NCBI GenBank assembly: GCA_002189035.1
Contig: NEEC01000018.1
Location: forward strand, 2,418,001 to 2,482,000
Reading direction: 5' to 3'
Length of the DNA stretch: 64,000 nucleotides
Origin: Utricularia gibba
Taxonomy: Eukaryota; Plantae; Magnoliophyta
Each line of letters starts with the position of its first letter. The stretch's first letter is position 1. Positions 5,170 through 11,564 of this stretch are shown piece after piece. The notes beneath the pieces are model-generated. The model saw only the letters and a list, made by a program, of their open reading frames with translations, was not told the origin of the DNA and did not search any database. The position numbers and the translations under genes are program-made.

Positions 5170-6701
5170 ATGGCTGAGAAGCAGAAGCTCCGTGCTCTGG
5201 TGTTCCCCTTCCCACTCCAAGGTCATGTCACCCCCGCCATAAATCTAGTCCTTAAGCTCGCTTCGAAGGGTCTTGCAGTCACCTTTGTTAACTTCGAATA
5301 TGTTCATAAAATGCTGGCCAAAGTGCATAGCAAGACAGATGCAGAGTTCGATTTGTTTTCTGAAGCACGGGAGTTTGGACTCGACATACGATACACAACC
5401 ATTGGTGATGGTTTACCCGATGAGTTCAATAGAGTTGTTCGACATCTGGAGTTCATGGAGTACATGCTGAGGGAGTTTCAGCCTCTTATGGAGGAGTTTG
5501 TGGGAAAGATCATAAGGTCAGATTCTGAATCCATGTATTTCTTAGTAGCTGACACTTTCTTTTGTTGGCAAGCAGCCGCTGCGGACAAGTTCAACCTTGT
5601 ACATGTATCGTTATGGACTGAGCCAGCCTTCGTCTTATCCCTGGTATGCCATCGAGGGCTCCTGAGACAAAGAGGCCATTACCCACTAAAAGGTATGCAC
5701 TACAGAGAGCACAACCTAGACCTGCGAAGCTGTTCATTTTCAAACATTTAGCAAATCACCGAAACAATTGTGCTTTTGAACCAGATAATGTTGAAGAGGT
5801 TATTGATTACATACCTGGCATCCCATCAGTGAATACGAAGGACTTCATGCCATATCTAAGGGAATCCGATATGGACACGATCTCCTTCAGATTTGGTACC
5901 AAAACATTTGATCTGGTACCCAAGGCTGATTTTGTTCTGCACAACACAGTCCAAGAGTTTGAATCCAGTACCCTATCCGCTCTCAGTAAATACCAGCCAC
6001 ATTATGCAATTGGCCCAATTAATTTCTACAAAGAGCTGACCAAAAGTTCCATAGACAAGAGTTTATGGGTGGAATCAAACTGCGCCAGCTGGCTTCAATC
6101 CAAGGCCCCTGGATCAGTTTTGTACATCTCATTTGGGAGCCTAGTTCCCGCCAGCGAACAAGTGGTTGAAGAAATAGCTCACGGGCTTATTCTTAGCCAC
6201 GTGAGCTTCATATGGGTGACTAGAGATGGAGTAGAGGGAAGTCATTTACACGTACTCCCAGTTGGATTGGAGGAAGAGCTCAAAGATAGAGGATTGATAA
6301 TTCCTTGGTGTAACCAGACCATGGTTCTTTCAGATCCCGCAATTGGTGGATTTCTCACACACTGCGGCTGGAATTCTGTGATAGAGAGCATTTGGTATGG
6401 AATTCCAATGTTGTGTTATCCATTAGATTATGATCAACCTATCAACAGGAAACTAGTAGTGGATGACTGGAACATAGGGCTGAATATCCAGAATGGGTAT
6501 ACAGTTGACAGGCATGATGTTGCCCAGAAGATTAAATCCCTGATGGCTGGAAATATATTAAAGGATGGTCATAAGATGAGAAATCTGAGTAACATGTTGA
6601 GGAATGCAATAGAGCCCGGTGGATCATCTGAGAGAAATTTTGATCAATTCATTACTGATCTCAAGGGAAAGCTTCACATCAAAGTTGCAGCAGAAGCATG
6701 A
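5170..6701 (+). CDS. UDP-glycosyltransferase, UGT86-like, copy 3 (exons 5170-5692, 5785-6701)
   Basis: LQGHVTP; PSPG WCNQTMVLSDPAIGGFLTHCGWNSVIESIWYGIPMLCYPLDYDQ; intron clearly homologous to the copy 2 intron; intact frame. Confidence 0.93.
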
Positions 6702-7258
6702 AATGTTTCAGACAGGTTCACATCAGTAGAATGTGCAATGTACTATTCAGTCAATATATTTGGTTAAAATTGTTATTCCCAGACACGTCATTTGATAATG
6801 ATTACCTTTCGAAAATGGTTTTTTCCAAGTGTGAGACTGTAGGCTGGTTTCAAGGAATAAAGTAGTATCAGAACGGGCAGGAGCTAGCATCATCCCAGAG
6901 AAACCAGAAGAACAGCTGACTGAATTTGAATACGAGATAAATAAATCATCCAATAGAGACAAAAAGAAACAAAACAAAAAAAAACAGTTGTTTGGAAAAC
7001 ATACCCCACCGTATCAAAAATACATTTCATATAGATAAGTCCTGAAAACATGGACCATAGATTGATTGGCAAAGCTTCATGGCAATTTGTAAATCAGGAA
7101 TCGTATAAAAAGAAACACAAAGAACGTTACCAAGAATTTGTTAAACGCACGAATCTATTCAGTATTTGTACAGGGAGACTTTTACCTTTTTACTAAACTT
7201 AATAGCCCTTGGCATGAAATTCATTGAGGTCATCCATAAGGATTGAATTTTCTTTAGT

Positions 7259-10200
7259 TCACTGTTCAACTTTTGTGAGTAAAAGTCTATACATGGGATC
7301 TCCACGAAATAGAACATGCCTCTCCCAATCTGAGGGCACTCCAAATGGATTTTCATTCAGCCAAACCTGTTCATCATTTTCCATAGCCCCTTGAAGTTGG
7401 GAAATAATGATGTATCCTTTACCATGTTTTATGAATTCCCTTTTCATTCTAATGGCTACACCTTCGATGTCAGACTGGAGAAAAACCTGTTGATCAAGAG
7501 TGGAAAAGTCAGGAGAACAATGAGCGTCAACTGGCATCCTAAAGACTAAAATCTCGATTATTTAAGTTGATATTATGTGATGAACCTAAAAGGACCCCAC
7601 CCGAAATTAAAGGAAATGTAAACATTGAGTACCTTTCCACCAGGCATAAGCATATCAATAATTGCTTTGACTAATGACCTTCGCAACATTCGTTGACAGT
7701 ATTCTGATTTTTTGAAATCAGGGTTTGGACACTGAAAAATGCGTACCAAAAACATCAGCTAGGGACATTACTGTACAAACATGAGAAACTTCCACAAAAG
7801 GAAATTCAAAGCATGAGACAAAAACCCATTATTGGCATAGCTTCTGAAAGGCAACTTTCCTGAATGGAGACAAGAGCCAGCTTCCCAGGATAATTGGAGA
7901 CTATAGATCTAAAGGTTGAAGTTACATCTGTTGCAATGAAATGCCTGAAAATAAATAAACAACTTGGTTTTTATGGGCTTAGGCAACTCCTTGACTGCTA
8001 CAAATCACAGAAAAAAGTTATATAAATATACAGATATGTGCATTTTCGATCTCTAAAGGTCAAAATCGAGGCTATTTCAAGAAACGAAAAAGCATACATA
8101 TTGTGAATTTCAAGCTGATGCACATCATCCAGGCAACGATCCACCAGCTGACCAGTAGCGGTGCAAAAAGTATTAAATTTGGAACCTCAAACCATAAAAG
8201 ATACTTTGCTGTAACAGCAATACCTTTGCATTCATTTCAAGCCCAAGGAAGTTCATATCATTTCTCCTTGTTGCCATTCCAAACAAGAACAAACCATTGC
8301 CTATAAGTACACATTATTATGTTAATTTCCTGTCAGCCCATGGACCAGATGAATCACAATTTGAAAATGCAATAATTGTAGAACAAACCAATGCCATGCC
8401 AATAACTAATAGGTGTATGCCAGTCTTATGCATCATGATGTAGAACTGTTTCAATAAAAAACTAAGTACCACTTCCGACATCAATAAATAGAGGCTTCAT
8501 TGGATCATCATAGACAACACTCCAGTCAATTTGGAAGGAATACGCCTGCATGAAAAAAAGTTACATATTTTCGTATATTATCATGAGGTAAAGAGATACT
8601 CATACTTTATCTAATGCCATAAGTCCAGGAAGCTTTCTACCCTTGAGAACCTCCCAAACAACCGTGGCACTGGCAACAAAATCACAGTTTGAAATATTCT
8701 TTGACCTCACCGCGAAATCTTTAAATTCCATTCTCCCAACAAAAGTGATATTGCAACTGGACACCATTACGAGTGCTTGGGCAAGCTCCAACATTCTACC
8801 TTTTCTTGAAGTGTCAAATGTCAATGGACCAATCCATAACACTTTCTGGAGAAAAAAGTAAATACAAAAGGTGAACAGCAGCATTCTGCACATCTTAGTT
8901 TCTCCGCAATCTATGATTCATCCTCATTGATACATTAAGTTTGTGTCTCTTCATGTGCTCAATCAATCCAAGTGTGGTTACTTGCATTTTAGAAGAACAT
9001 AAAAATGAATTCTCAAACGTATGATAGCGTTACCTTTGATTTAGAAAGAGAGTTGAATATTTCGTCCAATGATCTGGGTCCAATGTCAACTGGCTGCCAA
9101 CCTAGAATTACAAGAACACAAAGCCTCAGTGGAAAAAACAACATCGAACCAAAATCAGACACAAATTTAATCCGAGAACGTGAACTGACTTCCAAATTCG
9201 TATTCCACTCTTAATGTATTTCACATATGGTAAAAAGAGCTGCATAAAGCATTTTTGGTAGGCCTTGCTTCACAAAAAACCAAAATTTAATGGAAATACC
9301 TGGAGGAATAGAACAAACGGAAAACAGCTCCATCTCATAAGAACTATGGCCTTTTCTGCACCAAAAGTCTTTCGGAAGAATAAGAGGAATGTTTCTCGAC
9401 TTTACATGCTTCACTATGCTGGAAGCTTCTGCTAGTTCTTTAGTATTAATTAATTCCATGGGAACAGGTATGCCTAGGCCATGCATTATTTGAAATGCCA
9501 AGGTTCCCACAACGACCAAGCCATCGCATAATGAAGCCAAAGTATGCACTGCAGCAGCCTTGGCAGCAAGGTTTCCTCCTGTAAGCTAAATAAATTGCAA
9601 TCGGCAAGTTAATGCAAAAGAGGGCTTATGTATAAGTTTTAGCTAACACAAAATATACAAAGTTATAATCATTACAATAGCATAATAGGGCCTTTCGGCA
9701 GTGCTGATGATTCCCTTCATCTTGCAAAGATTCTCCTCAAAGAAAAATCCAGCAATATAGGCACCAGAGAAGCCAGCAATACCAACCGTCGATGCAAGAA
9801 TTTTATGAGATTCAGAAAAGGCATCATTGATGATCATATCAACCCAAGAGGCAAGTTCTTTGGAAAATTTGGAACAGTTGGCTGTCTCTTCTTTTAAGGG
9901 GTAGAGATTCTCAAGTAAAAGCACAACCTTATTTCCTTCAGTCTCCAAATTTGGAAATGGAGACCTGCTAATATATTTTTTTGGAACAACTTCAATTCCA
10001 AGCACCTCTGATAGAAAATCTGTACACAGAAAACTATTAAAAACAGGCTCGACATTAAAAAAGGATTACAAGTTTCGATATAATAATTGACCCACTTGCA
10101 ACAGTTTCAGATGGACAAGGTTCTGAAAGAGTGTCTGACCCAATGTTCTCATCCCATCTGCCAACGAGGACCACTTCAGCACCTGCTTTGTGTAAGTATG

Positions 10201-10835
10201 TAATTGTTTTTAAAGCACTTTCTGGCAATAATTTATGATCCATCATTCCTTGCAGTATAATCATGGTATCCATTCTGACCATGGCAATTTTTCCATGAAG
10301 CTCACTCTCGGGGAAGTTTCTAAGAAATTGCACGTGTGGAAATGTATATAATTCTCTCCTAACATCCTCAGATGCAATCTACAGAAGAGCATCTCAAGAT
10401 CAATGTTAATTAACTCAAAAGTGCAGGAGGCGATTTCGAGGACAATTATTCATAAGTATCCTCTGGAATTTTCTTAAGAAACCAAGAACATCAAATATTA
10501 AGAAAATCTGAATACCTTTCTTACACATGGATCTTCAACTTTCTTACCCTGAATACTTACTGCGTATAAGCAAAACCGCACACGGTGAGCGATTCAGAAA
10601 AATCCCATTTTCCTAATCAAAGAAATAAGTTTTGTGCTCTCCACAAATAAAGAATCTATCGAGGACCTAGAGACGGGATGAATGCGCATCTGCCTTTCCT
10701 TTTCTTGAACGCAGCACCATTTCTGGAATGAATAATCACATTTCGACAAGGAACCTCAGGCAATGTCAAAACAAAACCTTGATAAGTCGAGCTGAGACAG
10801 TAAATTCCTCCAAAATGAATGAACTGATTCATCAT
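7259..10835 (-). CDS. Fusion protein of ~678 aa: putative transit peptide + degenerate phosphoglycerate-kinase-like domain + TrmB/Trm8-type tRNA (guanine-N7)-methyltransferase-like domain
   Basis: Hand-built 13 exons with consistent phases: 10835-10667, 10559-10516, 10378-10096, 10007-9676, 9585-9300, 9101-9034, 8845-8606, 8545-8470, 8300-8224, 8147-8098, 7944-7860, 7731-7633, 7486-7259 (2037 nt). PGK landmarks: VRMD, LLENL, INDAF, VDIGP, LKGRKLPG. TrmB landmarks: PLFIDVGSGNG, NFLGLE, SIQCPNPDF, GKVFLQSD, WLNENPFGVPSDWE. Exons 1-2 and the exon 5 acceptor are less certain. Confidence 0.85.
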
Positions 10836-10950
10836 CGTCGTCTACCACAGAGGATCGCAGACACCAGATATTTAATTAATTACGATTTTTCTTTTCTTTT
10901 ACCATTTACATTAACGGTCGACTGATCTAACGAGCCGGGCCACACTTACA

Positions 10951-11230
10951 TCATGGGCGTCCAAGAAAGTATTGGGCCCTCACCCCACAAAAACTTCAAA
11001 TTTATTGTAATATAAATAAGAAATGAATTTATATGTGATTTTCCATGTACGCAAACAAAGATTCAATAAAAAAAGATAAAAATCTACTAAAATATCTTTT
11101 TTCTGTGCTTGATTTACTTCCCGGACTGCAGAAGCCATCCAAACGCGGCCGACAAATATGTCCAAGAACAGCGGCGCGGCGGCGGAGGACTGGGAGGCAG
11201 AACCAGGCTCTGGTGTTCCCTCTCCCGCTA
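10951..11230 (+). pseudogene. 5' relic of a fourth UGT86 copy (promoter + ~24 codons)
   Basis: gggcgtccaa(g/c)aaagtattgggccc, a TATA-like tataaataag and the leader align with ~774-970. ATG at 11158 reads MSKNSGAAAED (copy 1: MSPGSGAAAEE), followed by gctctggtgttccctctccc, identical to copy 2's ALVFPLP codons; homology then ends. Confidence 0.75.
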
Positions 11231-11564
11231 AAAAAAGCATTAACCAAAATAAAAATATGATGTTATTGGCCTCGTGGGTGACTTTGGCTTGAATGAGTGG
11301 ACACAGACACAGCACGAGGCGCCTCTCCTAACGAAACCCAGGCATGAGTTCATTCCTTCACCGGCGAGGTGGAAAGTTATTACAGTGTGTTTGCTGTGCG
11401 TCCCCACAAGGGTGTAGAGTGCTGCAACTTACGAATAACTCTACCCATCTCTAATCCATTCACACATGACTGACTATAACAAGCCAAGTGTTGTGTTGGC
11501 TATAAATATATATATAGAGTTGGATGACGGCAGCCACGTTCTTCCGCTGGTTGCTATGTTCTAT

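Follow-up and report, generated by a model that had tools for sequence, protein, structure and literature searches.

The gene on the minus strand at positions 10835 to 7259 of the window (the whole 64,000-nucleotide stretch of Utricularia gibba contig NEEC01000018.1) raises the question of whether a phosphoglycerate kinase (PGK)-like fold and a TrmB-like methyltransferase fold are made as one protein, and of what each half of such a protein could do. The original prediction, made from the DNA sequence alone, was that the PGK-like fold is fused to a TrmB-type tRNA guanine46-N7 (m7G46) methyltransferase. The locus is a single nuclear gene that is transcribed and spliced into one mRNA for both domains. 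The fusion is confirmed but is not a new one; its architecture was published in 2020 under the name PGK4B. We consider it probable that the gene belongs to PGK4B, that both halves of the protein are non-canonical, and that the protein is not a standard m7G46 enzyme.

The exon model was assembled by hand and with a script. Starting with ATG at 10835 and ending with TGA at 7261-7259, 13 exons form one open frame of 682 codons, with a coding sequence of 2049 nt and a single protein product of 682 amino acids. RNA contigs from four runs (X1, X2, X5, and X6, from three studies) were placed on positions 6800-11400, and all 12 junctions of the exon model are present in the contigs of the four runs taken together. 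A single X2 contig of 1,903 nt, extending from 7194 to 10380, contains exons 3-13 fully spliced with zero mismatches and spans both domains, in agreement with the proposal of one gene. Contigs start at approximately 10852-10858 and end at approximately 7194-7201, and the RNA depth is zero at 6800-7107 and at 10958-11111. The transcript is therefore bounded, with untranslated regions of about 20 nt (5') and 60 nt (3'). The gene is compact (7194-10858), with introns of 60-198 nt.

The PGK-like part closes at 8606 with the residues ...LPGLMALDK. As originally proposed, there is no stop at this point, and intron 7 (8605..8546, 60 nt, GT-AG) leads in phase 0 into six exons that code for the TrmB-like part. 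When the DNA is read unspliced past 8606, a stop is reached after one codon (GTA TGA). The junction 8606|8545 is spliced in X1, X2, and X5, and no transcript end between the PGK-like and TrmB-like domains was seen in the RNA contigs of the four runs. Other forms were also detected. Intron 7 is retained in an X5 contig (8517-8634), for which the predicted product is a PGK-like-only protein of 479 amino acids. Two alternative donors are contained in exon 7 (8845..8606). Use of the donor at 8641 (joint 8544|8640, X5) shifts the frame and gives a stop at residue 472, and use of the donor at 8711 (joint 8544|8710, X1) removes 35 codons in frame. In every run the fused in-frame junction is the deepest, with contig depths being a poor measure of isoform shares.

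Pfam was run on single exons, and the assignment of the whole protein was made via orthologues and local family hidden Markov models (HMMs). Residues 86-479 match the PGK part of the family HMM at 3.7e-139. The PGK-like domain starts at about residue 86 in exon 3 (10378..10096), which is bounded by RNA joints and has a weak Pfam PGK match at profile positions 4-54. It continues through exon 4 (10019..9676; Pfam PGK 4.7e-18, profile positions 75-187; joints 10019|10096 and 9585|9676), exon 5 (9585..9300; Pfam PGK 7.3e-07; joint 9585|9676 without ambiguity), and exon 6 (9101..9034; the GW..VD.GP segment; joints 9101|9300 and 8845|9034 in all four runs), and ends in exon 7. An acceptor for exon 5 at 9578 was rejected because it breaks the frame; only 9585 keeps the frame open, and the RNA agrees. 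The family profile for the PGK half matches solved PGK structures at up to 3e-90, the best being 7zy7, the Chlamydomonas chloroplast PGK. The AlphaFold model of orthologue P0173, made from a 60-sequence alignment, has a mean predicted local distance difference test score (pLDDT) of 80 and a predicted template modeling score (pTM) of 0.77, and its PGK part superposes on a solved PGK (Chlamydomonas chloroplast PGK) with a TM score of 0.83. The homology of the N-terminal half to PGK that had been read from the exons is thus borne out.

Residues 478-681 match the methyltransferase part of the family HMM at 2.2e-97. The TrmB-like domain starts in exon 8 (8545..8470), which is bounded by RNA joints, is covered by this HMM, and codes for the first part of motif I for binding of S-adenosylmethionine (SAM), FIDVGSG-. 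The remainder of motif I and the acidic residue of motif II (-NG...FLGLE) are in exon 9 (8300..8224; joints in all four runs), which has a weak Pfam Methyltransf_4 match at profile positions 12-35. Exon 10 (8147..8098, 50 nt; joints 8147|8224 and 7944|8098 in all four runs) is followed by exon 11 (7944..7860), which ends with ...LALVSIQ. Exon 12 (7731..7633) contains the motif IV region CPNPDFKKSEYCQRMLRR (C575-R592), has a weak Pfam Methyltransf_4 match at profile positions 81-111, and aligns to SDPWPKKRHEKRR of solved TrmB structures. The coding part of exon 13 (7486..7259; joint 7486|7633 in all four runs; contig ends at 7194/7201) contains VFLQSD and NPFGVPSDWE and ends with the TGA codon. 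The family profile for the C-terminal half matches solved TrmB structures (1yzh, 7e-11; 2fca/7nyb, 9e-11; Escherichia coli 3dxx, 7e-10), with weaker matches to METTL1 and Trm8. A search of solved structures with exon 13 alone returned only a chance match to citryl-CoA lyase (E 0.14).

With exon 4 as the query, 1.84 billion representative proteins were searched, and full-length relatives of 600-690 amino acids were recovered. Both PF00162 and PF02390 are present in 8 of the 10 relatives scanned, with Methyltransf_4 matches of up to 2.9e-26, which upholds the predicted relationship of the C-terminal half to TrmB. When an Aristolochia orthologue was used as the query, 517 proteins were obtained at E < 1e-10, and among the 120 that were listed, 120 carry PF00162 together with PF02390. 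The listed relatives span Amborella, Nymphaea, magnoliids, monocots, and eudicots. The fusion is also present in a lycophyte (Diphasiastrum) and in ferns (Psilotum and Pteridium). The two domains are thus fused throughout land plants and not split into two genes. When plasmids were searched by tblastn with exon 4, only bacterial PGKs were returned.

By its sequence, the locus is an orthologue of land-plant PGK4B. The fusion was described under this name by Foflonker and Blaby-Haas (Mol Biol Evol 2020, PMC7826186), who gave rice LOC_Os10g30550 as an example and listed the function as unknown. The same work reports that Arabidopsis is without PGK4B (PMC7826186). Literature searches aimed at functional work on the fusion turned up this paper alone, in line with the earlier statement that no functional study was known. 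Database labels for PGK4B proteins include 'phosphoglycerate kinase', 'uncharacterized protein', and 'PGK domain-containing/Methyltransf_4 domain-containing protein'.

The identity of the Utricularia protein to its relatives is 50-53%, colinear and nearly full length, with many eudicots at 50-52%. Overall, conservation of the protein in the family is strong. The best match is to Abeliophyllum (Oleaceae, Lamiales), with 53% identity over residues 2 to 668. This copy shares with PGK4B the same two domains in the same order, the family motifs CPNPDF, VFLQSD, and NPFG..SDWE, and identical intron positions at the domain boundary and after VSIQ. It differs in that its introns are very short. The domain-boundary intron of Abeliophyllum has the same position and phase, but is approximately 5.5 kb, compared with 60 nt here, and the Abeliophyllum gene spans about 18 kb. 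The public model for Abeliophyllum distichum (P0239; GCA_043235775.1, 501-18958) is 846 amino acids long and, past the PGK and Methyltransf_4 domains, includes a histone H2A C-terminal domain (PF16211). This model is probably the product of two adjacent genes merged by annotation.

The PGK-like half was examined by aligning this protein and 20 family members with canonical PGKs. The canonical motif HLGRP is replaced by RWDEN here and is not conserved in the family. The motif ENxRF is ENLYP here and ENLSx in the family; AHRAH is SHKIL here and SH(R/K)IL in the family; and GGSKVxxK is TGGNLAAK here and GGGNLxxK in the family. For the motifs WNGPxGxFE, GGGD(S/T), and TGGGA, the residues are WIGPLTFDT, VGRME, and ASATV here and WIGPVKFxx, VGNAA, and ENASV in the family, respectively. 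Among the columns that are invariant in six canonical PGKs, 37 of 68 are kept. The two ferns and the lycophyte keep the histidine of HxGRP in all three species, and the lysine of GGxK is kept in Psilotum and Diphasiastrum; these three proteins are also without WNGP, the glutamate, and GGGD.

Compared with canonical PGK (EC 2.7.2.3), the entire two-lobe fold is kept, together with the R.D and ND.F..SH(R/K) segments and the position equivalent to K219. The residues H62 and R65 (HxGRP), R122, K215, N336, and E343 are lost, along with the GGGD and TGGGA glycine loops. We take the lost motifs to be the basic patch for 3-phosphoglycerate (3-PG; H62, R65, R122, and R170, human numbering) and the site for nucleotide binding and phosphoryl transfer. 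The loss of the canonical 3-PG and ATP motifs makes the domain a presumed pseudo-kinase throughout the PGK4B family, and catalysis of the PGK reaction by this half is not expected from its sequence. The original prediction had also suggested that the PGK-like domain could sense a metabolite or a nucleotide, and this suggestion is not supported, given the family-wide loss of the same binding motifs.

The TrmB-like half has a homologous class I fold across the whole domain when compared with TrmB/Trm8-METTL1 (tRNA guanine46-N7 methyltransferase, EC 2.1.1.33). SAM motif I, the acidic residue after strand 2, the (T/S)D pair, and the C-terminal (T/S)xWE are shared. In this copy, motif I is D-V-G-S-G-N-G, the acidic residue is that of L-G-L-E, Q-S-D replaces the canonical T-D, and the C-terminal S-D-W-E replaces the canonical T-E-Y-E. 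At the sequence level, most SAM motifs are invariant or nearly so in 60 family members. Three of the TrmB hallmarks listed in the original prediction (DxGxGxG, FLGLE, and xSD) are therefore present; the fourth, (F/C)PDP, is absent, and the motif here is CPNPDF. Two further differences from TrmB/Trm8-METTL1 are found. The RHxKRR loop is altered, being EHRWRM in the family and EYCQRM here, and PGK4B is fused to a PGK fold of 400 residues rather than having a short N-terminal extension or a WD40 partner.

Motif IV of this protein is C-P-N-P-D-F (residues 575-580), and Asn577 aligns to the aspartate of S-D-P-W in 1yzh and 2fca. The form CPNPDF is found in 101 of the 109 family members with a recognizable motif IV. 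The other forms include CPDPDF (n = 3; Amborella, Persea, and Cinnamomum), CPDPNF in Psilotum, CPVPNF in Pteridium, CPIPDF in Kingdonia, and CPNPEH in Nymphaea. The position that is catalytic in TrmB varies (D, N, V, or I) within an invariant C-P-x-P. In Aquifex TrmB, Asp133 is highly conserved among TrmB/Trm8 proteins and is regarded as the catalytic center, and either D133A or D133N abolishes activity (review PMC6320965). A catalytic carboxylate moved by two residues (N-P-D in place of D-P-x) was considered, and would fit DPN in Psilotum, DPD in Amborella, and NPD in most angiosperms. This idea was not adopted because Pteridium (VPN) has an acid at neither position.

These differences bear directly on the possibility of a genuine organellar tRNA m7G46 methyltransferase whose PGK-like domain acts as a sensor of a glycolytic metabolite or nucleotide, or as an RNA binder, and so couples carbon status to tRNA modification. 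The full-length TrmB homology, including the SAM motifs, (T/S)D, and C-terminal (T/S)xWE, is in its favor, as are the strong conservation of the motif IV loop and the aspartate of Psilotum and of the three CPDPDF proteins. A scaffold domain also has a precedent, since yeast Trm8 requires a non-catalytic partner (PMC6320965). The catalytic aspartate is, however, replaced by asparagine here and in most members and by valine or isoleucine in two, and the corresponding D133N enzyme of Aquifex is dead. The orthologues match TIGR00091, the NCBIfam TrmB equivalog, from end to end (positions 7-192 of 194), and their scores of 82.8-91 bits are below the cutoff of 112.65. The canonical residues for binding 3-PG and ATP are lost, which counts against the metabolite-sensing part. 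Finally, chloroplast tRNA m7G46 is present in Arabidopsis (bioRxiv 10.1101/2024.06.14.598963), which is without the fusion. The fusion is therefore not needed for this modification, at least in Arabidopsis, and the proposed link to organellar tRNA m7G46 is not supported. Taken as a whole, a true m7G46 methyltransferase is unlikely, and the name tRNA m7G methyltransferase is not sustained for this gene.

The reading that we prefer, a PGK4B protein with two non-canonical halves, suggests a mode of action that begins at the N-terminus. The coding part of exon 1 (10835..10667; joint 10667|10559 in X1 and X2; contigs from 10667 to 10852/10858) encodes most of a basic, poorly conserved N-terminal segment and is followed by exon 2 (10559..10516, 44 nt; joints 10559|10667 and 10378|10516 in X1 and X2), the phases of which fit. 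A 58-nt first exon ending at 10778 was excluded by the RNA, in which exon 1 runs to 10667 and is joined to the 44-nt exon 2. Residues 1-60 include 1 acidic and 7 basic residues, and the residues that match positions 1-77 in the orthologue model have pLDDT < 50. With this basic composition and predicted disorder, the first 80 or so residues look like an organellar presequence. The nearest canonical relatives of the two halves are plastid-type or bacterial-type PGK and TrmB. The presequence would direct the protein to an organelle, where the C-terminal TrmB-like domain would bind SAM. This domain would then either methylate a target other than tRNA G46 by the canonical mechanism or act without catalysis. 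In this scheme, the dead PGK fold would be a rigid module for docking or substrate recognition, not a sensor of glycolytic metabolites.

Several observations weigh against this reading. The aspartate of motif IV is kept in Amborella and the Lauraceae, and motif IV with its surroundings (QCPNPDFNKPEHRWRM) is among the most conserved segments of the family. Such strong conservation fits a working active site, and from the sequence the protein could be an active enzyme, conceivably one that still forms m7G by a modified mechanism. The Methyltransf_4 matches in single exons of the window are two weak, colinear Pfam matches with E values of 0.14-0.21. These direct matches are weak because each exon codes for only 25-33 amino acids, and the assignment rests on the orthologues and profiles. 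For every PGK4B member, we infer SAM binding, target, and localization from sequence. In addition, this copy may be losing function, since residues that are invariant or nearly so elsewhere are changed (R586C, W587Q, and G282T).

A more specific proposal is that PGK4B is an active SAM-dependent methyltransferase with a changed target or chemistry, in which the dead PGK fold is used for substrate recognition. Motif IV would have changed from DPx(W/F) to the strictly conserved NPDF, which presumably resembles the (D/N)PP(Y/F) motif of amino-group methyltransferases. We regard this proposal as a tentative possibility. If it is true, PGK4B would be an enzyme of unknown substrate, and this copy would be a fast-evolving variant with a rebuilt substrate loop (R586C, W587Q).

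Eleven introns of the gene are GT-AG, and intron 11 alone (7859..7732; CAG|GAAAGT ... TTTCAG|TGT) is GA-AG. The RNA joins 7860|7731 in X1, X2, and X5, and an X6 contig stops at 7860, where its loose end matches the first 10 bases of exon 12. With TTCAG on either side, the joint is ambiguous over 5 bases. The intron is read as GA-AG because no shift of the joint yields GT-AG or GC-AG and the AG acceptor is kept. The same GA is present in an unspliced X1 contig (7707-7889, zero mismatches), and it is therefore not an assembly error peculiar to the window. Intron 11 is retained in contigs of X1 and X6. A canonical GT donor located 12 nt inside exon 11 (CTT|GTCTCC, which drops VSIQ) was ruled out because the RNA junctions use 7860|7731. 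The agreement of all 13 exon phases that was originally predicted stands, and the predicted length of 2037 nt is corrected to the 2049 nt given by the RNA. We infer that the shortfall of 12 nt came from this internal GT donor, since it is the only in-frame way to lose 12 nt.

The orthologous intron at the same codon boundary (VSIQ|CPNPDF) begins as CAG|GTAATA in Abeliophyllum and as CAG|GTAGGT in Solanum. The change of GT to GA is thus lineage-specific. GA-AG introns make up approximately 0.01% of annotated plant introns, and the functional case that has been studied is that of SYMRK in Trema orientalis (PMC10668435). As in intron 11, the SYMRK intron has a single-base donor change at a conserved position and is spliced precisely (PMC10668435). 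The two differ in that the ancestral donor of SYMRK is GC, whereas the orthologues of intron 11 have GT, and retained-intron contigs are found here. The locus offers a natural example of a GA-AG intron, well supported, where the relatives have a GT donor.

The protein sequence of this copy is unusually divergent. Changes are found at 26 of approximately 200 highly conserved columns, compared with a median of 7.5 for 110 members, and more such changes are found only in non-angiosperm members or in partly mis-predicted models. In a relative-rate count with Abeliophyllum as the sister and Solanum as the outgroup, there are 112 unique changes here versus 32 in Abeliophyllum (chi-square 44), distributed over both domains. 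The evolution of this copy is about 3.4 times faster than that of Abeliophyllum, its closest relative. Among the changes are G282T, in what was the GGG of the GGxK loop; N552D/A553V; and R586C/W587Q, which lie in the EHRWRM loop that follows motif IV.

Such changes, some at residues that are invariant or nearly so elsewhere, would be expected of a relaxed copy that is decaying in this lineage toward a pseudogene and is still transcribed. The loss of the GT donor found in orthologues, the retained-intron contigs, and the frame-shifting alternative donor point in the same direction. The 682-codon frame is nevertheless intact, with no stop or frameshift, and the GA intron is excised precisely and in frame in all runs, which argues against a dead gene. 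The fused in-frame form is the deepest junction in each run, and 162 of the 188 highly conserved columns are kept. Both domains are accelerated alike, and the acceleration may simply reflect a generally fast-evolving lineage. Decay of the gene therefore appears quite improbable, and the copy is read here as an intact member of PGK4B.

The neighbors of the gene bear on a further proposal, in which the fused protein would act in arsenate handling by analogy with the algal relatives PGK3 and PGK4A. The algal PGK3 and PGK4A genes adjoin ArsJ and GAPDH3, PGK4B is reported to be kin to PGK4A, and a Chlamydomonas PGK3 mutant is sensitive to arsenate; the possibility was raised by the authors of that work (PMC7826186). 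The extension to PGK4B itself is by analogy. No ArsJ or GAPDH3 adjoins the Utricularia gene, the downstream neighbor being a UDP-glycosyltransferase, and the kinase motifs needed for a PGK-type reaction are lost. A role in arsenate handling is thus highly improbable. The downstream neighbor is a convergent open reading frame at 5646-6701 on the plus strand (351 amino acids), which matches the C-terminal half of UDP-glycosyltransferase (PF00201, E 1.3e-19) at profile positions 267-414 only and may be truncated or multi-exon. On the other side, RNA contigs from X1, X2, and X5 cover 11224-11400, about 370 nt past the 5' end of the gene, and belong to another transcribed unit.

The fusion is annotated in hundreds of plant genomes, and there is nothing new in the fusion itself. 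The Utricularia copy is one more, unusually divergent, member of PGK4B. Of interest are the GA-AG intron, which is supported by RNA, and the fact that both halves have lost canonical catalytic residues across the family. PGK4B is conserved from lycophytes to eudicots and yet is missing from Arabidopsis, which is probably why it has gone unstudied. With the kinase motifs gone and the TrmB aspartate replaced, neither half of PGK4B can be assumed to do its textbook job, and the labels 'phosphoglycerate kinase, cytosolic-like' and 'tRNA m7G methyltransferase' are probably wrong for this family.

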